The notes below the pieces were generated by a model. It searched no databases. It worked only from the letters and a program-made list of their open reading frames with translations, and was not told the DNA's origin. The translations under genes were made by a program, and so were the position numbers. A stretch of DNA of 64,000 nucleotides from the sequence record MN871447.1. The stretch is one strand, 5' to 3'. This document shows, one piece after another, positions 12,281 to 22,526 of this stretch (its first letter is position 1; the number at the start of each line of letters is the position of its first letter).

Positions 12281-15076
12281 ATGAATAGTTACGAAAAGAA
12301 AACGGTGAATCCTACCGGGATCAAAGTTTCCAGTCGTCCACAGGATTGGCTCCAACGCACCCCTTCGGCTACGGCAATTATGTCGAAACTGGTTCAGGAT
12401 GCGGTACATCGTACGACTACACCTGGAAATGGTGTCGATGTTCCCGACCCAACGATTTTCGACCGTCTCGTCAGTCGTCGCGCCAGAAAGAACCTGGACG
12501 CAGAAACAATCATCTCTTTAGCGCCCGACATTAAATTGATTAAACAGATGATTGTTTCCACTACCCTTTCTCCGGTCGATATGACCCAAGGAGAGTTAGG
12601 ATTTAAAACCGAGGCGTCAGAGATCCCGCCAAGCGTCCTCAATCAAGTCACAGAGGTCATACGGGATCATTTTGAGTCATACTACCCCTTACGCGATAAA
12701 CTCCCTGAGATCATCGGAGAGGCGTTATTTGAAACAGGTGCGTGGGTCGGTGTAATTGTCCCGGAAGCTGTTATCGATGACATCATCAACCTTCGCGAAG
12801 TCGGCAGTTATCTGGCCACGGAAAGTTTCAATGAGAAACTGAAAACGCATTTCGTTGACGGAACCTTAAAGTCTGTCGGGATCTTAGGTGACCCAGGAAT
12901 TACCGATCAGGAAATCCGTGATGCGAATAAAGGTAAAAAGAACATTCGCAGTAGTGCACCGGCACCGTCTTTAGAAAGCATGTTCTCCATGCCGGTTATG
13001 AACCCTAATCAGGTTCGTATTAATGACAGTGCCACCATCACCGATAACCTCGGAATTATGGGTTTGAGCCATATCCGTAACCAGATTAATGAAGAGCGTT
13101 TGAGAAACAAATACCGCTACGGACGTAGCGGAGCAGGGATGGAGGCGTACCGGTCAAGAAACGGTCATAACAACGTCTCGACGGTCGCGAGAACGCTTTA
13201 CAACTCACGGTCTGGTCAAACTAGCGTTAACCCTGTTAAAGTCATTCCTGCGGCCTCAGAAGCCAGCAGAAGCAGTATTGGTCATCCGCTGGTCATTAAG
13301 TGTCCCTCAGAATCGGTGATTCCGTGTTACCCGAAAGGCGATGAGCGAAACCACATCGGTTACGTCATTGTCCTGGATGAGCTGGGTAACCCGATCAACT
13401 TAACCGATGAACTGAACCAGGCAGCCACTAATGGTCAGATCGGTACAATGGGTGCTCAGCAACAACTGGACATGACCTCCAGTTTGATCCAGCAAACCCG
13501 CATTGCGCAGAACGGTATCTGTATGGATACCGACAAAATGGCGGCGGAAGAACGTATTCGCGTCTATAACCAGGTCTTAGAGGAAAACATCCTCAACCGT
13601 ATTAAAAACGGTTTGATCGGTCGTAACGTGAAGATGGCCTGGAACGAAGATATCATGCGTATCATGATGTTCCGTCAGTTTGCGAACCAACGTACTAACC
13701 TCGTCTTTGTCCCTGCTGAACAAGTCGCGTATTTCGCTTACGACTACGACAGTAACGGGATGGGGAAATCGTTGCTTGATGACATCAAACAGGTCTCTGC
13801 ACTGCGAGCCATGACCACCTTCGCTAACTTTATGGCGGGCGTGAAGAATGCGGTAGGACGAACCAAAGTAACGATGAACATCGACCCGCGTACACCTGAC
13901 CCCGAGAAAGCTTATGCGATCTTGATTGATGAGTATCAACGAATGACCAGCACCGTTACTCCTACGGATGTCAGTTCTTCGGCGGAAATGTTCCGCGTAC
14001 TCAGAATGATGGGGACGACGATTGAAGTACAGGGTAACCCACGTATCCCGAATACTACTGTGGACATTAATGAGTACCAATCTCAGAAACAGATCATTGA
14101 TGAGAACTTTACCAATGATCTTCGTCGTCAACAGTATATGGGTCTCTTTGTTACACCGGCGATGGTGGACATGACTGACGAGGCAGACTTTGCTATCACC
14201 CGTTGGACGTCTAACCAGCTCTACGCTAAACGTATCATGATGATTCAAGACGACACCTGTAAGCACGGGAAGAAGCTCGTCAGATCATACGTGAACTCGG
14301 ACGGTGTTTTAATCGGGCGTATTCAGAAGATCTTTGCCGAGAACAACGATAAACTCCCTGAAGAATATCGTCTCGATAAAGAAAGTCATATCCCGGAAGA
14401 TTTAAAATACCTCGATGCGATCGACGCTTATTTTGACGCATTCTACCTTGAGTTACCTCGTCCGGAAAATAACCGGATTGAGAAACAAAAAGAAGAATTC
14501 GACAAAGTGAAAGATATGATTGACGACATTGTCGACTGTTATATCTCAAGCGAACTTCTGGGGGCATTTGCACCGGAAGATCAATCTAAGATCGATATGC
14601 TCAGGGCACACATGACAGCGTACCTGAAACGCGACTGGTTACAGAGTCAAGGCTTCGATATGGGCTTTGTGAAAATCCTGTCGCCGGTCACGGAAGAAGA
14701 TCCGTCGCTGGATATGATCAAAGTCTTTACTACCGACATTGTCAATATGCTGCATAACTTTGGCGATTTCAGCTCGGCATTGGCGGCCACCCGTGACGCG
14801 TTACTGAAACGGATGGAAGTAGAGAACCCGAAACAGCATGAGATCCTTACAGCCAATAATGACGCTGGCGGCGGTTGGGACAATGGCAGTTCCGGAAACG
14901 ATTGGGACAACAACGATTCCGGTGGTGGCGACGCCTTTGGCGGTGGCGACTTCGGTTCCTTCGAAGATACCGAGGAAGATCCTTTCGCCACGGACGAGTT
15001 AGAAGGAGGAGAAACTTCCACTGAAGAGGAAGCAGATCCTTTCGCTACACCAGAAGAAACAAACGGACCTGAATAA
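12281..15076 (+). CDS. Portal protein (phiKZ gp129 / SPN3US gp81-like)
   Basis: 931 aa; size, position near the MCP and motifs (ALFETGA, IKCPSESVIP, IGYVIVLDELGNP, YFAYDY...G.GKSLL, acidic tail) match recalled family; [AS]xE maturation sites ATES, SLES, GMEA. Confidence 0.75.
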   Translation: MNSYEKKTVNPTGIKVSSRPQDWLQRTPSATAIMSKLVQDAVHRTTTPGNGVDVPDPTIFDRLVSRRARKNLDAETIISLAPDIKLIKQMIVSTTLSPVDMTQGELGFKTEASEIPPSVLNQVTEVIRDHFESYYPLRDKLPEIIGEALFETGAWVGVIVPEAVIDDIINLREVGSYLATESFNEKLKTHFVDGTLKSVGILGDPGITDQEIRDANKGKKNIRSSAPAPSLESMFSMPVMNPNQVRINDSATITDNLGIMGLSHIRNQINEERLRNKYRYGRSGAGMEAYRSRNGHNNVSTVARTLYNSRSGQTSVNPVKVIPAASEASRSSIGHPLVIKCPSESVIPCYPKGDERNHIGYVIVLDELGNPINLTDELNQAATNGQIGTMGAQQQLDMTSSLIQQTRIAQNGICMDTDKMAAEERIRVYNQVLEENILNRIKNGLIGRNVKMAWNEDIMRIMMFRQFANQRTNLVFVPAEQVAYFAYDYDSNGMGKSLLDDIKQVSALRAMTTFANFMAGVKNAVGRTKVTMNIDPRTPDPEKAYAILIDEYQRMTSTVTPTDVSSSAEMFRVLRMMGTTIEVQGNPRIPNTTVDINEYQSQKQIIDENFTNDLRRQQYMGLFVTPAMVDMTDEADFAITRWTSNQLYAKRIMMIQDDTCKHGKKLVRSYVNSDGVLIGRIQKIFAENNDKLPEEYRLDKESHIPEDLKYLDAIDAYFDAFYLELPRPENNRIEKQKEEFDKVKDMIDDIVDCYISSELLGAFAPEDQSKIDMLRAHMTAYLKRDWLQSQGFDMGFVKILSPVTEEDPSLDMIKVFTTDIVNMLHNFGDFSSALAATRDALLKRMEVENPKQHEILTANNDAGGGWDNGSSGNDWDNNDSGGGDAFGGGDFGSFEDTEEDPFATDELEGGETSTEEEADPFATPEETNGPE

Positions 15077-15136
15077 AAAAAGAGGGCACAAACCCTCTTC
15101 CCTCCCACAGAGAGCGAAAGCTCTCTGTGGGAGGGT
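15077..15136. terminator. Double hairpin, bidirectional terminator between convergent genes
   Basis: aagaggg-cacaaa-ccctctt preceded by an A-run, then ccctcccacagagagc-gaaa-gctctctgtgggaggg (16-bp stem). Confidence 0.85.
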
Positions 15137-15145
15137 TATTACCGA

Positions 15146-17365
15146 TTAGTCTTGACGACGCAGAGCCAGTACAAAGCTATCGGATTTAGCATCCTGATAA
15201 TCTTTGCGGACTTCTAACCAGCTGTTATCGGCGAACCAGATATAGTTCAGGCACGCGATATCGCTACCGGCATTAAAGTTCATGGCTTTCAGCGCGTTAT
15301 GCAGTTTAGGTGAGGTTTCTTGGGACACGAAGAAGATTTCACCCGGCTGAGCATCAGCACTGATTCTCAGTTTCAGGTCGTTAACCAGCATCGGGGCGAT
15401 AACCATATTGATACGTTTTACCACATAGATGGTACGCGCATCGGTGGTTTCGTTGACACCGGCACCAATAATCCCTGAACCCAATTTAAACATCTGGAAG
15501 TTAGCCAGGTGGAACGAGAACGCGCCAGCCAGTTTCTTCGCAAACTCAGCGCCACGTGCTTTAGTGACGTCATCCGCCAACGTCGCCAGATCTTCAAAGC
15601 TTTCAATGCGCAGACCGCAACCCATTTCCAGACGGAAGATAGAGTTCACCAGTTCGACGATATGGCGTTTCGCAGCCACTACCAGCGCAACAGGAACACG
15701 ATCGATGACACGCTTCAGGTTATCGTGGATATCCTGAATATAGCTCAGTTCAATATTGTCATTGAAGTTGAGACCCGTCATCTCCAGTTGACGCAGCGTG
15801 AACCGTGCTTCTTCCGGCGTAGCGCAAGTGTAAATCGGCTCGTAGGATTCCGCGGCGGTTTGGAACGCATTGAAGTTGGTGTGCAGGTGACCGTTCTGAT
15901 CGTTGGTCATTTCTTCGGTACGAGACATTTCCTGCATACGGATATGACCCAGACCGAACCCCTTCACCGTTTCATCTGAACGGAGAATATTCTCGAACGA
16001 GATTGTTCCCGCGTTCGGGGCTTCAGGAACCACTTTCTGTTCTTCCGGCGGCAGTGCGCTGTTTTCTTCCTTGATACTGGCAACCACGGCTTCGTACTCC
16101 TGACGGTCCTGGTCACGAAGTTCGCGGTTAGCTTTCACGTTAAAACGTGGGCCGGCGATCGCTTTACGGATCTCGGCGTTTTTCGGGTGATAACGATTAT
16201 CGGCTTCTTTTGCGCCGATGACGTTCAGTTCGTGAATTTTACGATCCACTTCTTTTACCTCTTCAGCGGTTAACGGTTCAAACGCCATGTAACGATAACC
16301 GTCACTGGTGATGTCCCATACAGGGCGAACAGAGTCCACTTCCCATGCGATTGGACGGTGGTTATTCACTTCGTTCGGATGGAGCGGGATAGACATGACC
16401 ACTTCGTAATCGTCTAATTTGATCAGACCCGATTCAATGTCTTCACGGGTAATAGGACGATTCGCTAAGCGGTTACCTTTTGACGAGTAACCCGGTGCAG
16501 GTTCAGCCGGCGCGGCTTTCTTTTTACTGAATGAAGCGGGACGAGTGACTTCATGCGGTTCTACTCGCTCGTACGCCGGCGCGGCGTTCGCGGTGCGTGG
16601 GTCTGGCATTTCGAAATCGTCACGTTCGTCACGATTCACTTCATTCCCGTTTGCTTGTTCGCGCATACGGGCGGTGGCGACATACGGGTTAACACGACGA
16701 CGATTGTTACGGGCAGCATTAATATCTACCGCAGGTTCCCGACGAGAGTCAGCACGACCACGAGTAGGGATAGCGCTTTCGTAACGGCCTGGACGAGAAC
16801 CGAAACCACCGGAATTCCGTCCACGATCATCGCGATCTTCGTAACGACCTCTGCGTTCATCACGACCACGGCCTTCATAACGCCCACGACGCTCTTCTTC
16901 GCGCCCACGGCCGAAGCCGCCACTGCTACGACCAAAACCACCACGGCGGTCGTCGCGTCCACGGTCACCAAAGCGGCGACCACGATCAGCTTCTTCCGCA
17001 TACTCTTCCAGTGCACGACGCAGTTTATTAGCATTGTCAGCCAAAAACAGCATGTCGTCTTCTGTACGGCGATCGGGGATATCGACACTACGGTCTTCTT
17101 TGATCAGCGCCCCGGCAAAAAATGAGGCGAGTTCAATTGCTCCTTCCCAAAGGTCATCTGGTTCTTTACGGAGGTCAACTAACATTTCCATGGAGTCGAA
17201 AACGAAGTTGATTAAGTTTTCACGGGTCTGACGACTGCGACGAATCGCATCGTCAAGGTATTCGAAGAACGGATCGTCACGGGACAGTTCGCTGATGCGT
17301 TCATCCAGGAAAGCAGCCAGGTTGCGATCGTTAAAATCCATCTCATTACGACGACGGTTATACAT
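15146..17365 (-). CDS. Hypothetical protein with RG/RGG-rich disordered region
   Basis: 739-aa ORF with AGGAG SD; residues about 125-210 are R/G/D/E/F/Y low complexity; same operon as the nvRNAP subunit. Confidence 0.7.
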   Translation of the reverse strand: MYNRRRNEMDFNDRNLAAFLDERISELSRDDPFFEYLDDAIRRSRQTRENLINFVFDSMEMLVDLRKEPDDLWEGAIELASFFAGALIKEDRSVDIPDRRTEDDMLFLADNANKLRRALEEYAEEADRGRRFGDRGRDDRRGGFGRSSGGFGRGREEERRGRYEGRGRDERRGRYEDRDDRGRNSGGFGSRPGRYESAIPTRGRADSRREPAVDINAARNNRRRVNPYVATARMREQANGNEVNRDERDDFEMPDPRTANAAPAYERVEPHEVTRPASFSKKKAAPAEPAPGYSSKGNRLANRPITREDIESGLIKLDDYEVVMSIPLHPNEVNNHRPIAWEVDSVRPVWDITSDGYRYMAFEPLTAEEVKEVDRKIHELNVIGAKEADNRYHPKNAEIRKAIAGPRFNVKANRELRDQDRQEYEAVVASIKEENSALPPEEQKVVPEAPNAGTISFENILRSDETVKGFGLGHIRMQEMSRTEEMTNDQNGHLHTNFNAFQTAAESYEPIYTCATPEEARFTLRQLEMTGLNFNDNIELSYIQDIHDNLKRVIDRVPVALVVAAKRHIVELVNSIFRLEMGCGLRIESFEDLATLADDVTKARGAEFAKKLAGAFSFHLANFQMFKLGSGIIGAGVNETTDARTIYVVKRINMVIAPMLVNDLKLRISADAQPGEIFFVSQETSPKLHNALKAMNFNAGSDIACLNYIWFADNSWLEVRKDYQDAKSDSFVLALRRQD

Positions 17366-17407: not shown

Positions 17408-19024
17408 TTATTCGGTAATTTCCCGCTGTACCATATCGAGGAGTTCAATGTTTTTCGGATTACGAATAAATTTCCCGGCGTCGTCGGTGTGGGCGTAAAC
17501 GTTTAGACGTCCACGGCCGTCGGGGATACCTTTCGCAAAGTTGCACACTGAACCACATTCCATGATACTTGAATGCAGGTGGTAAGCCGTTTCGTTAGGT
17601 TTGAAACTTTTTGTCTTACCTTTACCGATAACAGCATTGACTTGACGGATAGCGATACATGTATGTTTGAAAATCATGTTATCGCCTGGGTACTGAACAG
17701 AGTTAAGTTCGCCGTGTCCCCGTTGGATACCGAGGAATGCGTTAGTGGTTAGGAAACTGGACAGCTTCCATGTTAACCGCTTCAGTCGCAGCGTTTTCTG
17801 TTCTTTTTCTAACTGCCAGGTAAAGTTAAAGATACTCTCCGTGATGCCCGATAACGCATACCGTTTCACCAGGAGATATTTCCCCCACATGTTACCCGAA
17901 TTATCGTCTTTCAGTCGATCCTGGATTGTCTCAAGGATATGGATAAACAACTCGTAAAGGTCATTGGCCATGATCCCTTCTTGACGAAGGTTTTTCTTCG
18001 TCTCGCCATCAACGTAAGAGTCGAGCGACTTAAGATGGAGATCAACCTTGTTGAGCAGTTTCCCTTCGTTCTCGTTCCCCTGATGCAGAATAAAGCCCAT
18101 GATAATGCGCCACGTGTCTGGCATATCGATGTACTGCAAATTGAAGCGTTGCGGGTAACGATCGACGACGTAGAAGAAATGCGTCGCCAGTAACTGAACA
18201 CCGATATTGTTCAACACCGCTTCACGCGGAATGATCAACGCCAGGTTCGTGGGTTTCCAATCGCTGATAGCGCGGCGGCGTTCCGGCGGCGGTAACCCTT
18301 GCGTGGTAAAGATCACGTAGTCTTGTTCTGGGTAATCCTCACGTAAGTTGTGGCGGTTCTCTTCGATCACGACGTCAATGTCGTAGAAACGTTTAAAGGT
18401 TTCCGTTACGCCATACTTACAGAACAGGTAATGACCCAGCGTCGAGTTAAACGACGATTTCTTCCCTTCGTTCCCTGTTTTACCTTGATAGATATTTCCG
18501 TAGACTACAAAGGACGGGATTGATTCGCCGTCTTGTAGGACACTGTAAATACTCCGTTTCAAGGTGAACTTCGCTCGGAAGAGGATTGTGAACAAATCAT
18601 TCCCGGCGACCGAGAAAACCAAATCCGCCAGGATCGGATGAATTGTTGCACGTGAGCCGCCTAACCATAACGTCCCTGCTTCCCTGACAAACGGAATATT
18701 GATGTTCCGTGGTAGGATGTGGATTTTCTGAAAACGCAGTTTCATTTCCGACATCACCGCGTCAGTTTGCGCAATATCAACTTCCCCACGACGTTCCGCC
18801 TTTTCATTCCCTTTAATGATCGCCTGAGACTCTTCGTAGGGCGTCAGTCTACGCATCCCCAGGTATTCGACATCGGGAGGAAAGTCCTGTGCCGCACAAT
18901 GCGCAATTCGATCGATATACTGTTCGGCATCCTCTAAATCCTTAACAGCAAATCCACCGGCAATGTCTTTGTTGAACTTGGGTAACGGTTCAACAATGTC
19001 ATTAAACAATGCTATATCAGCCAC
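17408..19024 (-). CDS. Non-virion RNA polymerase beta N-terminal subunit (phiKZ gp123-like)
   Basis: GTG start with AAGGA SD; IPFV..AGTLWLGG (beta region A-like), HSSIMECGS...GRGRLNVY (GRICP-like); position next to MCP as recalled for the family. Confidence 0.75.
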   Translation of the reverse strand: MADIALFNDIVEPLPKFNKDIAGGFAVKDLEDAEQYIDRIAHCAAQDFPPDVEYLGMRRLTPYEESQAIIKGNEKAERRGEVDIAQTDAVMSEMKLRFQKIHILPRNINIPFVREAGTLWLGGSRATIHPILADLVFSVAGNDLFTILFRAKFTLKRSIYSVLQDGESIPSFVVYGNIYQGKTGNEGKKSSFNSTLGHYLFCKYGVTETFKRFYDIDVVIEENRHNLREDYPEQDYVIFTTQGLPPPERRRAISDWKPTNLALIIPREAVLNNIGVQLLATHFFYVVDRYPQRFNLQYIDMPDTWRIIMGFILHQGNENEGKLLNKVDLHLKSLDSYVDGETKKNLRQEGIMANDLYELFIHILETIQDRLKDDNSGNMWGKYLLVKRYALSGITESIFNFTWQLEKEQKTLRLKRLTWKLSSFLTTNAFLGIQRGHGELNSVQYPGDNMIFKHTCIAIRQVNAVIGKGKTKSFKPNETAYHLHSSIMECGSVCNFAKGIPDGRGRLNVYAHTDDAGKFIRNPKNIELLDMVQREITE

Positions 19025-19047
19025 ACATGCATCCTTATTTCAATCAA

Positions 19048-20046
19048 CTATAACACAACCGCGGCCGCGGTCGCACCCAACACCGCCTTCTTCGTCAAGA
19101 AAGACAGTAACCATTTTCCGGCTTTCATCATAGTCGGTAGAATGGATTTAATAAATTCTCCGCCGGCTTTAATCCAGGCTGAGACCACTTTCGCTTTCTT
19201 CTCTTTATCTTCGCTTTGCTTCCCTTCCTTTAACGACGCCTTTTCCATCTCAAGTTCTTTCAAAGCTGCTTCTCGGGACGTATGGAACTTAATCCCTAAC
19301 GGATTGTTTCCCGATATTGCATCTTCGAAAGAAAAGAAGCTTTTGGTCGCTAATAAGCGAAGTCCCTCCTTAATTTTGCCGTAGTTTTGAACAGTGACGC
19401 CATCGGGCTCGTTAGACGCACGAGAGATATTGACTTTCAATACCTGGTTACCGATGGTATAATAAAGCCCTTCGACAAATCGTTCTTTGTCGACAGCACT
19501 CACGACAATACCTGACACCTTACTGATTTTACACCCGATATCATCCTGGACAATATCGTGAATGGTTTCTTCACGATCAACCAATGACGCTTTAGAAATC
19601 CGCATCCCTAAACCCGGGACGCTAATCTCCGACCCTAACGTATCGAAATCGCTTTCGTCTATCAAGAACACCATACGGTATTTGTAATGGTTTCTCGAAC
19701 AACGTAGGTCCTCGTCAAAGTGCACCATGCAGTTACCTTTGACAGCATCATAAAGGCCGAAGCTCGCCTCAGCATAATTATTCTTCGGGTCGTCAATATT
19801 GACCGTATCAGTGCAATAGAGTACGGTAAGGTGGATGATCAAATACCCACGTAACTTTGCCGTTCCGTGAGAAAATACAACATTGTCAGTCCCATCGGAT
19901 TTCTGTACAGCAAGATCGTACCGATAGTTGTTAGTGATCTCCATGGTAACGGATAAATCACAATTCCCTGTACGGTAATCATTTGCCATCACTAGAAACT
20001 CATGGGGCATCTTTTCTTTTCGAGGATTATCTCTCTTATAGACCAT
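19048..20046 (-). CDS. Hypothetical protein, early-expressed
   Basis: 332-aa ORF directly downstream of TATATTAC; C-terminal amphipathic/hydrophobic tail. Confidence 0.65.
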   Translation of the reverse strand: MVYKRDNPRKEKMPHEFLVMANDYRTGNCDLSVTMEITNNYRYDLAVQKSDGTDNVVFSHGTAKLRGYLIIHLTVLYCTDTVNIDDPKNNYAEASFGLYDAVKGNCMVHFDEDLRCSRNHYKYRMVFLIDESDFDTLGSEISVPGLGMRISKASLVDREETIHDIVQDDIGCKISKVSGIVVSAVDKERFVEGLYYTIGNQVLKVNISRASNEPDGVTVQNYGKIKEGLRLLATKSFFSFEDAISGNNPLGIKFHTSREAALKELEMEKASLKEGKQSEDKEKKAKVVSAWIKAGGEFIKSILPTMMKAGKWLLSFLTKKAVLGATAAAVVL

Positions 20047-20135
20047 CCGTACTTCCTGTTAGTGAATTGAAATGGAACTTTCGTTCCGGTCAGTTTGGAT
20101 CTTTCTCAAGGATCCTTCTATACACTCTCAATAAG

Positions 20136-20143
20136 GTAATATA
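20136..20143 (-). promoter_or_regulatory. phiKZ-type early (vRNAP) promoter core TATATTAC
   Basis: Minus strand reads ...cagaccTATATTACcttatt..., an exact match to the published phiKZ early consensus core, upstream of the nvRNAP-subunit operon. Confidence 0.7.
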
Positions 20144-20176: not shown

Positions 20177-20206
20177 CCCAGTCTCCCGCCGAAGCGGGAG
20201 ACTGGG
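20177..20206 (-). terminator. Stable C(UUCG)G hairpin after the MCP stop, without U-tract
   Basis: Minus strand cccagtctcccgc-TTCG-gcgggagactggg, 13-bp stem, followed by tc-TATG. Confidence 0.7.
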
Positions 20207-20240: not shown

Positions 20241-22526
20241 TTAGGACGCAGGAACAACCTGAGTTTCGTTAACGTCGAGCGAGGTACGCTGTGCGATCGC
20301 TTCTTCCAGGTTGATCACGTTGATGACCAGCATGATCGGCAGGAAGTTGAAATAGCGGTAGCGCGGAGTCAGGCGGATTTCTTTACCGATACGTTGGTTA
20401 CGGATCATGTTGAAATCAACCAGGTATTCCGGGATGAAGCCCAGAACGCCGTGCTGCAGCGGATGCGGTTCAGACTCGTTCGGCAGGATGAAAGTCATGA
20501 CGATCTTGTCTTTCATACGCAGATCGGAGATACGCGCGATGGTGTAATCGTAACCGATACCCACGGTGCGGTCGTCGCCGTTGATCTGGATGTACTGCGG
20601 CAGACGCATGTCAGTACCGATAGCTACGTGCGGCTTCGGAGAACGGCCAGAGAAGGCAGCTTCCAGAGCAGCGGTGTAACCGGTCAGCTGATCTGCGGTG
20701 TAAACCATTTCGTTGATCTTGGACACGATCAGGCCCTGAATATCGCTCTGTTTTGCAGCAGAGGTCAGGCTGTTCAGATCGTTCAGAACATCGATGGTCG
20801 CTTCGTTGAAGTACGGACGCACGTAGTACTGACCAACACCTTCCAGACCCAGGTTGGACTCGATCGGGTGCGGAACGCCAACGCCCAGATAGGACTTCAG
20901 GGTGTCTGCGCGGTTCAGCAGGGTGGTTACGGCGTTGTTACGCATCTGGATACGATACGCGGTGGTCAGAGCTTCCAGGCGCGGATAGGTTTTGTCGTCT
21001 TCAACCATGGCCGGTTTAACGATAACCAGCGGCGGCAGAGTCGGGATCATGAAACCTTGTTTCTGTACGTCGGAGTCAATCAGCAGACCCATTTCCAGCT
21101 GGTTGATGTTGGTCAGACGAGCTTCCAGGCTATAGCCTTCGCCTTTCACTTCCAGACCGGACAGTACCGCAGCAACGCGCGAATCGGTCAGCGCGATTTC
21201 TTTACCGTCTTTGTCGAAGACGCGAGCAACGCGCAGAGAACGCAGAGAGGTGTCGCCGTTACCGTTTTCAACGTTCATTTCGCCGTCGATTTTCACGTCC
21301 AGCTCAACGCGATAACCCTGATCGAACAGAGAACCGAAGATTGTAGATTCAGCGCCGTTCACCAGACGAGTCTGATCGCCCAGACCGATAGCGGTATGGA
21401 ATTTCAGCTGCATCTGACGGAAGTTGTATTCGCGGGTCGCGGTGTACGCAGCGTACTGGTTCTGGTTAACGTCCAGCGCCAGCAGTTCAGTGGTGCCGCC
21501 TTTGGTGACGGAGACCAGCAGTTGTTTCAGGGCAATACGGCTGTCCAGGGAGTCGGTAAAGGTCATGGAACCTTTTTTCAGACGGGACGGCGTTTGCGCC
21601 AGCATCAGCAGGTTGAAGCCTTCGCCGTTTTCGCTGAATTTCAGGAAGTTGGTATCGAAGGTGTCTTTACCCTGTTTCACGGTCTGCGCAGCCAGAACCG
21701 ACGGGGCGATGAACTGGTCGTCGTTTTCGCCAGACTGGATAACCGGGATCAGCTCAGTGCTGTTGGTTTCCAGAGTGGTGTAATCCAGCAGGCCCTGCAG
21801 GATGTTACGCTTGATGATTTCTTGTTTCTCGCCGCCCAGACCTTCACCGGTCCAGCCTTCCCACACCATGTTACGACGGATAGACAGCTGGAAGCCAGCC
21901 TGGTCCGGGGTCACGATATAGGTGCGATAGAACAGTTCAGCGAACTCGTGCTGTTTCGCTACGATCATGTTGATCGCGTAGGAGTGTTCACGCCATTTTT
22001 CGGTTTCTTTCTCGTCGAAAGATTCCAGAGACGGCAGGGAACCGGCCGGCAGGGTCGCAATGGAACCGTTAGCACCCGCAGAAACGAATTCGTTAACACG
22101 AACGTCGTTTTCAAAGGACGGAATGCTGTAACCGTCACGGTAGTAAGCGCGCGGTGCGTTGTGAGACATCGCCAGGACAGCAGCTGCTTCAACCGCAACT
22201 TCTTTCTGGTGTTCACGCAGTTCTTCACCGCCGTCAACAAAGCCTTCGCCTTCGCCGTCTACTGCATCAGCAGATTCGGTGATGGAGCTGATCTGATCGA
22301 CCGCGTCGTTCAGGGACTCTTTGACCGCTTCCAGGGTGGATTCTACTTCTTCCGGGTTTACGCCCAGTTCACCGTAGCTTTCCAGCGCAACAGACATGAC
22401 ACCAGCGGCAGCGCCCTGCGGCAGCAGGGTGTGGTTCTTTTCAACGGACTGGCGAACGCTGTCGACCAGTGATTTAATAGCACCAGCAGCGCCGGCGCCC
22501 AGTAGACCTTTTTTAGGACGTGCCAT
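20241..22526 (-). CDS. Major capsid protein precursor (phiKZ gp120 / SPN3US gp75-like)
   Basis: 761 aa; strongly optimised codons; propeptide with ALES, AVEA, SFEN and SLES sites; A.KQHEFAELFYRT and PRYRYFNFLPIM motifs recalled from the family. Confidence 0.88.
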   Translation of the reverse strand: MARPKKGLLGAGAAGAIKSLVDSVRQSVEKNHTLLPQGAAAGVMSVALESYGELGVNPEEVESTLEAVKESLNDAVDQISSITESADAVDGEGEGFVDGGEELREHQKEVAVEAAAVLAMSHNAPRAYYRDGYSIPSFENDVRVNEFVSAGANGSIATLPAGSLPSLESFDEKETEKWREHSYAINMIVAKQHEFAELFYRTYIVTPDQAGFQLSIRRNMVWEGWTGEGLGGEKQEIIKRNILQGLLDYTTLETNSTELIPVIQSGENDDQFIAPSVLAAQTVKQGKDTFDTNFLKFSENGEGFNLLMLAQTPSRLKKGSMTFTDSLDSRIALKQLLVSVTKGGTTELLALDVNQNQYAAYTATREYNFRQMQLKFHTAIGLGDQTRLVNGAESTIFGSLFDQGYRVELDVKIDGEMNVENGNGDTSLRSLRVARVFDKDGKEIALTDSRVAAVLSGLEVKGEGYSLEARLTNINQLEMGLLIDSDVQKQGFMIPTLPPLVIVKPAMVEDDKTYPRLEALTTAYRIQMRNNAVTTLLNRADTLKSYLGVGVPHPIESNLGLEGVGQYYVRPYFNEATIDVLNDLNSLTSAAKQSDIQGLIVSKINEMVYTADQLTGYTAALEAAFSGRSPKPHVAIGTDMRLPQYIQINGDDRTVGIGYDYTIARISDLRMKDKIVMTFILPNESEPHPLQHGVLGFIPEYLVDFNMIRNQRIGKEIRLTPRYRYFNFLPIMLVINVINLEEAIAQRTSLDVNETQVVPAS

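Follow-up and report, generated by a model that had tools for sequence, protein, structure and literature searches.

The jumbo phage protein JADA (Pa36 gp316, orthologous to phiKZ gp124; both from Pseudomonas phages) was found by proximity labeling as the activator of the Sir2-type bacterial defense Avs5, an NADase, and is largely restricted to the Chimalliviridae, where its gene always lies directly downstream of a subunit of the nonvirion RNA polymerase (nvRNAP) (Muralidharan et al., Mol Cell 2026, PMC12931631). Its published layout comprises an N-domain (residues 1 to 170), a long disordered linker, and a C-domain (residues 270 to 721), which is sufficient to trigger Avs5 and whose dimer is a closed ring with a strongly electronegative base (PMC12931631). 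JADA is early, abundant, and cytoplasmic, a fluorescent fusion gives foci at early-infection (EPI) vesicles, and the authors, who modeled DNA in the ring, propose a role in early transcription (PMC12931631). Antisense-oligomer silencing of PhiKZ124 lowered plaque numbers weakly and ChmA more strongly; phage transcription at 30 min was strongly affected by the PhiKZ124 knockdown (PMC12571901). JADA is both important for chimallivirus infection and the trigger of Avs5, and a 2026 review still classes it as a protein of unknown function. The JADA paper is silent on linker composition and describes the linker as "disordered" only (PMC12931631). Here, we analyze that linker in a 64,000-nucleotide stretch of sequence record MN871447.1 (the window), which comes from a Klebsiella jumbo phage of ~300 kb and of the nucleus-forming type. 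A 739-amino-acid (aa) open reading frame (ORF) at 15146..17365 carries an arginine/glycine-rich mixed-charge low-complexity tract at 16778..16987 (residues 127 to 196); both lie on the minus strand, as do all features located below unless stated otherwise.

ChmC (PhiPA3 gp61, phiKZ gp67) is the second described system that invites comparison, being likewise a conserved chimallivirus protein that joins a folded domain to a low-complexity disordered region. Among such chimallivirus proteins, ChmC alone has been shown to bind phage mRNA and to condense together with RNA, and it is the published candidate for mRNA export (PMC11077065). ChmC differs from the window protein in its size (~250 aa), its tetrameric state, its Whirly fold, and a C-terminal tail rich in N/G plus S/D/E, and the two have no fold or sequence relation; neither the N- nor the C-domain of the window protein gave a Whirly-fold match in Foldseek or VIA searches. 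In a near-identical genome (G001), where 96% of the words sampled from the window recur, a separate ChmC homolog is encoded elsewhere (285 aa; E value, 2.1e-8), so the window protein is not this phage's ChmC. The same genome encodes a chimallin homolog (639 aa; E value against phiKZ chimallin, 3.2e-11), which on sequence grounds places the phage in the chimallin-encoding, nucleus-forming lineage. This bears out the phage-nucleus life cycle that had been assumed when the window was first read from its letters and ORFs (the sequence-only reading).

Evidence for orthology with JADA

The sequence-only reading had called the 739-aa protein an orphan, a label that it loses here: it is almost certainly a JADA ortholog, as judged from fold, profile, architecture, and synteny. 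In the AlphaFold2 model, a helical N-domain is followed by a disordered stretch and a globular C-domain. The C-domain (15149..16498, residues 290 to 739; predicted local distance difference test score [pLDDT], ~80 to 90; net charge, ~-18) matches Protein Data Bank (PDB) entry 9RP3, titled "Avast type 5 activator (Gp316, JADA jumbophage protein)", with a Foldseek E value of 1.2e-12, a probability of 1.00, and a template modeling (TM) score of 0.60 (target normalized). Chains 9rp3_A and 9rp3_B top the Foldseek search of the PDB, and the following match has an E value of 0.39. VIA-align superposes 324 residues on 9rp3_B, drawn from model residues 328 to 737, with a Z score of 22.9 and a root mean square deviation of 4.1 Å; the runner-up has a Z score of 5.0.

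At the sequence level, the relationship emerges from profiles. A 17-sequence family profile aligns with phiKZ gp124 in hhalign over 159 columns at the C terminus, i.e., the last ~160 residues (probability, 96.2; E value, 2.3e-9), and the PCH45 homolog has a tblastn E value of 2e-11 to the window protein and an E value of 3e-6 to phiKZ gp124. The JADA paper shows PCH45 as a JADA carrier (Fig. 6A in PMC12931631). The window protein alone has no significant BLASTP match to phiKZ gp124, Pfam and PHROGs scans assign it to no family, and PDB sequence searches with either the single protein or the profile returned no match, 9RP3 having been reached by fold search only. All 26 BFVD matches at an E value of <=1e-3 are viral, the named ones being jumbo phage or uncultured myovirus proteins. 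A HMMER search with the C-domain profile over 1.84 billion representatives gave 20 matches, nearly all in jumbo phage proteins of 690 to 960 aa and located C-terminally; one of the 20 (P0023, 1603 aa) proved to be a translated tandem repeat and was discarded. A word-based protein search turned up just five close relatives, and a pattern scan of IMG/VR turned up two loci.

Synteny points the same way. The first pointer to gp124 was a protein of ~690 to 740 aa behind the nvRNAP gene of FBKp24, Moabite, PCH45, and phiKZ, and an ORF of 516 to 852 aa lies on the same strand behind that gene in all 18 other loci examined (these four phages, Pa36, and 13 further phages). The window protein thus shares with JADA of Pa36 and phiKZ the C-domain fold, the three-part build, a length of ~720 to 740 aa, an acidic C-domain, a gene placed directly downstream of a gp123-type nvRNAP subunit on the same strand, a promoter-like octamer at the same spot (see below), and a chimallin-encoding phage as its source. 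It differs from Pa36 JADA in that identity in the aligned structure is ~15%, in that sequence similarity is detected by profile only and over the last 160 residues, and in its shorter N-domain (~127 versus 170 residues), the N-domains being compared by position in the layout and not by homology. The DNA of the gene is 100% identical in the KpLz_1_41, KpXa_1, and KpYy_2_45 records, and FBKp24 gp369 is 68% identical to the window protein. The JADA annotation now reaches the Klebsiella jumbo phages of the FBKp24/KpLz group, in which the gene is still labeled hypothetical.

An arginine-rich mixed-charge tract opens the predicted linker

Between the N-terminal six-helix domain (16985..17347, residues 7 to 127; pLDDT, ~90 in the full model and 91.5 when modeled alone; net charge, ~-13) and the C-domain lies a predicted disordered linker (16508..16981, residues 129 to 286) with a pLDDT of 29 to 46, the value staying below 50 over residues 129 to 270 and 272 to 286. 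The model agrees with the sequence-only reading that the tract sits between a helical N-domain and a globular C-domain, and it shows the tract to be just the opening portion of a predicted disordered linker of ~160 to 175 residues. With a probability of roughly 80%, we read the tract as the N-terminal portion of the long linker in this phage's JADA, the ortholog of Pa36 gp316 and phiKZ gp124.

The compositional bias of the tract is pronounced. Arginine and glycine make up 42 of 70 residues, with the best 70-residue span (residues 125 to 194) holding 23 R and 19 G, whereas in 2000 whole-protein shuffles the maximum R+G count per 70 residues averaged 19.5 and never exceeded 27. Against the 23 arginines stand 15 D and E, giving a net charge of +8. 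The wider linker (residues 127 to 303) contains 40 R and 4 K and has a net charge of +14, within a protein that as a whole is acidic (~-17). The sequence-only reading had described the region (16735-17000, residues ~123 to 211) as an RGG/aromatic low-complexity region. Its arginine and glycine richness stands; the RGG label fits less well, as the tract contains just one RGG triplet. By the RGG/RG motif definitions, which reportedly go back to Thandapani and colleagues in 2013, the protein has no tri-RGG, no di-RGG, one tri-RG, and three di-RG motifs; RG motifs do occur in it, if weakly. It is better termed an arginine-rich mixed-charge tract than an RGG box.

The eukaryotic proteins that such a composition brings to mind are those with RGG/RG boxes (FUS, LAF-1, and Ddx4) and the nuclear-speckle proteins with mixed-charge domains of the RD/RE type. 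The window linker resembles these domains in being disordered, in favoring R over K, and in its interspersed G, its D/E, and some F/Y, along with its single tri-RG. It differs from them in having no RGG repeats, a near-neutral charge, well-mixed charges, and no adjoining RNA-recognition fold, and its likeness to both groups is one of composition only.

Short-range variation bears on whether the amino acid sequence of the tract matters. A close variant on a metagenomic contig (run X4) carries 24 differences in the 5.1-kb unit, of which 23 fall inside the JADA-like gene (15149-17365) and a single one in the two upstream genes (17411-20046). Twenty of the 23 are synonymous, three change an amino acid, and there are no indels. 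Of the eight substitutions in the low-complexity tract, only one changes an amino acid (N184S), which indicates that the amino acid sequence of the tract is under purifying selection despite its low complexity and an 18-nucleotide (nt) repeat. The clustering of substitutions has the appearance of a recombined allele, or of a local hotspot of divergence, in the very gene whose product Avs5 senses.

The repeat just mentioned is a tandem repeat with an 18-nt period at 16837-16888, within the tract. In a wastewater run (X7), the low-complexity tract (16815-16910) is exactly where the assembled contigs break, probably because of repeat or strain variation there, and metagenome assemblies of the JADA-like gene may be fragmented at this point.

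Two linker compositions among JADA orthologs

We compared the linkers of 35 orthologs, comprising 16 representatives from the big search, the window ORF, and the ORFs behind the nvRNAP gene in the 18 loci. The JADA linker exists in two sharply different, internally conserved compositions. An arginine-rich, near-neutral mixed-charge linker is found in 23 of the 35, down to ~20% identity, namely in the window clade, Moabite, PCH45, PhiEaH1, Ralstonia RSF1, Vibrio pVa-21, and all metagenomic representatives. These linkers contain 16 to 32% R, almost no K, and D/E nearly as numerous as R, with a charged fraction of 0.34 to 0.64 and a net charge per residue of 0 to +0.08. Summed over the 23 orthologs, the R:K ratio is 788:90 (8.8:1) in the linker versus 979:651 (1.5:1) in the rest of the protein. 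The other 12 orthologs have a polar linker that is nearly uncharged and rich in G, P, Q, N, S, and A; these are phiKZ/Pa36, 201phi2-1, a RAY-like Erwinia phage, Goslar, Miami, EL, CF8, RTH11, RP12, pEa_SNUABM_54, and EarlPhillipIV. Conservation of composition among homologs, which the sequence-only reading had named as a check, extends to arginine-rich mixed charge in the larger class and gives way to a polar linker in the smaller one. The RGG-plus-aromatic grammar that it took for the functional unit is not what the relatives keep, since arginine-rich mixed charge is retained and RG motifs and F/Y are not.

Among the polar linkers, those of phiKZ gp124 (locus L004, 8877-11039), Goslar gp038 (locus L019, 5308-7863), and the RAY-type phage have a high content of Q, N, G, P, and M, a prion-like composition of the kind tied to condensates in the ChmC paper, so that both linker types belong to condensate-prone kinds.

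What the linker may do

Each JADA dimer of the window's clade would carry two arginine-rich, near-neutral polyampholyte arms that connect the ring to two acidic N-domains. Such arms could make many weak contacts with nucleic acid, either nascent phage RNA or incoming DNA, or with acidic partners, and these multivalent contacts may help JADA to accumulate where early transcription takes place. The preference for arginine over lysine and the purifying selection suggest that the arms are probably more than spacers. JADA's location at the vesicle and its link to transcription fit a nucleic-acid-related role and do not point to export. We put forward a role of the linker in nucleic acid contact or clustering tentatively, as our best guess but with odds short of even.

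Several observations weigh against this proposal. The functional statements on which it draws come from orthologs at roughly 15 to 20% identity, and Pa36 and phiKZ, the orthologs with experimental data, are the ones with a polar linker, rich in G, P, Q, and M and almost uncharged, where the window linker is arginine-rich and of mixed charge; the core function of the family therefore cannot depend on arginine richness. The linker is near neutral and not a polycation, the whole protein having a charge of ~-23 in both linker classes. Charge patterning is random, with a kappa of 0.14 for the window linker against a shuffle mean of 0.15, and blocky charge patterning was accordingly rejected. RG/RGG motifs and aromatics are not conserved across the arginine-rich clade: the Moabite, RSF1, and pVa-21 homologs have one di-RG each, and aromatics number as few as 2 to 3 per linker in several homologs. 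Searches of the N- and C-domains in Pfam, with Foldseek, and in a wide structural comparison found no RNA-binding fold. The uncharged linker of the studied orthologs, the near neutrality, the random patterning, and the lack of conserved motifs argue against a specific role of the linker as well as against RNA binding as the core activity of the family.

The same observations lend themselves to a simpler explanation, in which the linker is a plain spacer that needs only length and disorder, letting the N-domains move relative to the ring while its composition drifts between lineages with no bearing on function. Two very different compositions at one position within the family are what such drift would leave, as are random charge patterning and widely differing lengths, and the sole assayed activity, Avs5 triggering, needs the C-domain alone. 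Drift sits less well with an R:K ratio that is 8.8:1 within the linker and 1.5:1 outside it across 23 homologs, with a composition kept in Klebsiella, Serratia, Erwinia, Ralstonia, and Vibrio phages though the sequence is not alignable, and with the seven of eight tract substitutions that are synonymous in the close variant. The arginine preference, the composition kept over deep divergence, and the mostly synonymous change argue against a mere spacer, which we nevertheless consider a real possibility, if a somewhat less than even one.

Disordered tracts that are rich in arginine and contain F/Y are capable of RNA binding and phase separation, and the sequence-only reading had proposed a candidate RNA-binding condensate or mRNA-export factor. 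In its strong form, that reading amounts to an RGG/aromatic RNA-binding domain responsible for phase separation and for exporting mRNA out of the phage nucleus. The JADA foci at the early-infection vesicle and the disturbed phage transcript levels after knockdown are compatible with such a domain, as are the condensate-prone polar linkers of other orthologs, for which the N/G-rich tail of ChmC offers a precedent. The protein, however, has no RGG repeats and one tri-RG, its motifs are not conserved in relatives, and aromatics fall to the low counts given above. The reported foci belong to the vesicle stage, before a nucleus exists, and the literature on JADA orthologs yielded no RNA-binding experiment; the authors of the JADA paper propose that DNA is bound by the C-domain. 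With ChmC as the published export candidate and a homolog of it present in this lineage, nothing specific speaks for mRNA export by the JADA-like protein, a role that ChmC would fill better; we rate the RNA-binding export domain as rather unlikely.

A broader version of the nucleic acid contact proposal would make JADA a scaffold of the early transcription site, with the ring dimer and N-domains docking on polymerase or vesicle and a linker condensate capturing nascent RNA or the genome. We regard this as doubtful. If it were true, arginine-rich and polar linkers would be alternative chemistries for one clustering function. The noise-level alignment of N-domain residues 1 to 99 to sigma-2 domains, described below, adds a weak hint in its favor.

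The charges of the window protein, with a basic linker (+14) between an acidic N-domain (-13) and an acidic C-domain (-18), could also reflect an intramolecular partnership in which the basic tract folds onto the N-domain or the base of the ring and masks it until a partner arrives. The N-domains are indeed more acidic in the arginine-rich class than in the polar class (-8.1 versus -2.1), and the base of the solved JADA dimer is strongly electronegative. The C-domain, by contrast, has the same net charge in both classes (-16.8 arginine-rich, -16.9 polar), so the ring does not need a basic linker, and AlphaFold2 places the linker nowhere confidently. A basic linker offsetting the acidic ring was rejected as a rule for the family on the same equality of C-domain charge, and intramolecular pairing in the window protein appears quite unlikely to us.

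Arginine-rich proteins can condense DNA, and the gene sits between capsid and portal-like genes, a setting in which a DNA-condensing virion or inner-body protein might be encoded. Neither phiKZ gp124 nor its FBKp24 homolog carries a virion annotation, which their neighbors do; JADA is reported as early, cytoplasmic, and vesicle-associated; and the whole protein is acidic (~-17). A virion role is therefore highly improbable.

The two linker compositions, together with the arginine preference and the purifying selection, offer a concrete handle on JADA function; by themselves they change no general picture.

The transcription unit and a promoter-like element

On the minus strand, the gene order is the major capsid gene, a 332-aa gene, the nvRNAP subunit gene, and the 739-aa ORF. 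The phiKZ-type major capsid gene (20241-22526) is recognized by Pfam PhiKZ_MCP with an E value of 1.7e-218. The 332-aa gene (19048..20046; phrog_7727; E value, 2.9e-7) is the first of the unit and matches this PHROG only, a family with no assigned function; it is likened to phiKZ gp122 by position, and a gene holds this position in all relatives examined. phiKZ gp122 is a core gene with no assigned function, and its knockdown strongly alters phage transcription too (PMC12571901). The nvRNAP beta-type subunit (17408..19024, 538 aa), the ortholog of phiKZ gp123, matches phrog_2943 "polymerase" with an E value of 1.7e-155, and tblastn finds it in 224 jumbo phage records, including phiKZ-type phages at 27.5% identity. 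The 739-aa ORF, with its ATG at 17365 and a TAA stop, closes the series and converges on a portal-like gene of the plus strand.

The three genes of the unit are separated by gaps of 23 nt and 42 nt, the latter between the nvRNAP gene and the 739-aa ORF, and an AGGAG sits 9 nt before the ATG of this ORF. Upstream, a perfect GC-rich inverted repeat at 20177..20206 forms the predicted terminator hairpin of the major capsid gene transcript, and the FBKp24 annotation has a terminator at the same spot. Some 35 nt beyond this hairpin, between the capsid gene terminator and the first gene, lies the promoter-like octamer TATATTAC (20136..20143). An alignment of the intergenic regions of the window, FBKp24, Moabite, and two metagenomic relatives shows it to be invariant among all five, which have otherwise diverged, and it recurs at the equivalent syntenic place in phiKZ (between gp120 and gp121), Pa36, and PhiEaH1. 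It occurs as a single copy in the window, a count that by itself is not above chance. Downstream, two hairpins, the second followed by a T-run, were read after the stop of the 739-aa ORF (15074..15134) and would end the unit.

The conserved octamer, the short gaps, the ribosome-binding site, and the terminators together make co-transcription of the three genes from a conserved phage promoter well supported at the level of sequence, and the co-transcription with nvRNAP claimed in the sequence-only reading is consistent with this arrangement. That reading had further placed the gene downstream of the nvRNAP subunit, which its same-strand position right behind that gene confirms, and of an early promoter. 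The promoter-like element is borne out by its invariance among the five relatives; "early" is inferred, resting on a second phiKZ copy of the octamer 73 nt upstream of the chimallin gene gp54 and on the phiKZ early consensus, of which TATATTAC is reportedly the core (Ceyssens et al., 2014).

A stem-loop (GGATCC ... GATCC, with a GAGAAA loop) lies at ~20085-20115, 20 to 50 nt downstream of TATATTAC, and is kept in the aligned intergenic regions. Both sides of the stem are changed in one relative (locus L007; GACC ... GGTC). As a hint only, this conserved stem-loop would fit a 5' leader with secondary structure or an element close to the promoter.

Resemblance of the N-domain and occurrence in metagenomes

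The N-domain alone, compared with 48,161 structure chains, gave no clear solved fold (best Z score, 5.6). Among the top 50 rows, its residues 1 to 99 (17069-17365) align to the sigma-2 domains of ~10 extracytoplasmic function (ECF) sigma factors with Z scores of 4.3 to 5.3, which is the noise level for helical bundles. Given the tie of the gene to phage transcription, the modeled resemblance is only a lead.

Near-identical DNA of the unit was also recovered from food, food-fermentation, wastewater, plant, and fertilizer metagenomes (runs X1 to X18, from 11 studies), in every run as assembled contigs, which indicates that the phage group is widespread outside clinical isolates.

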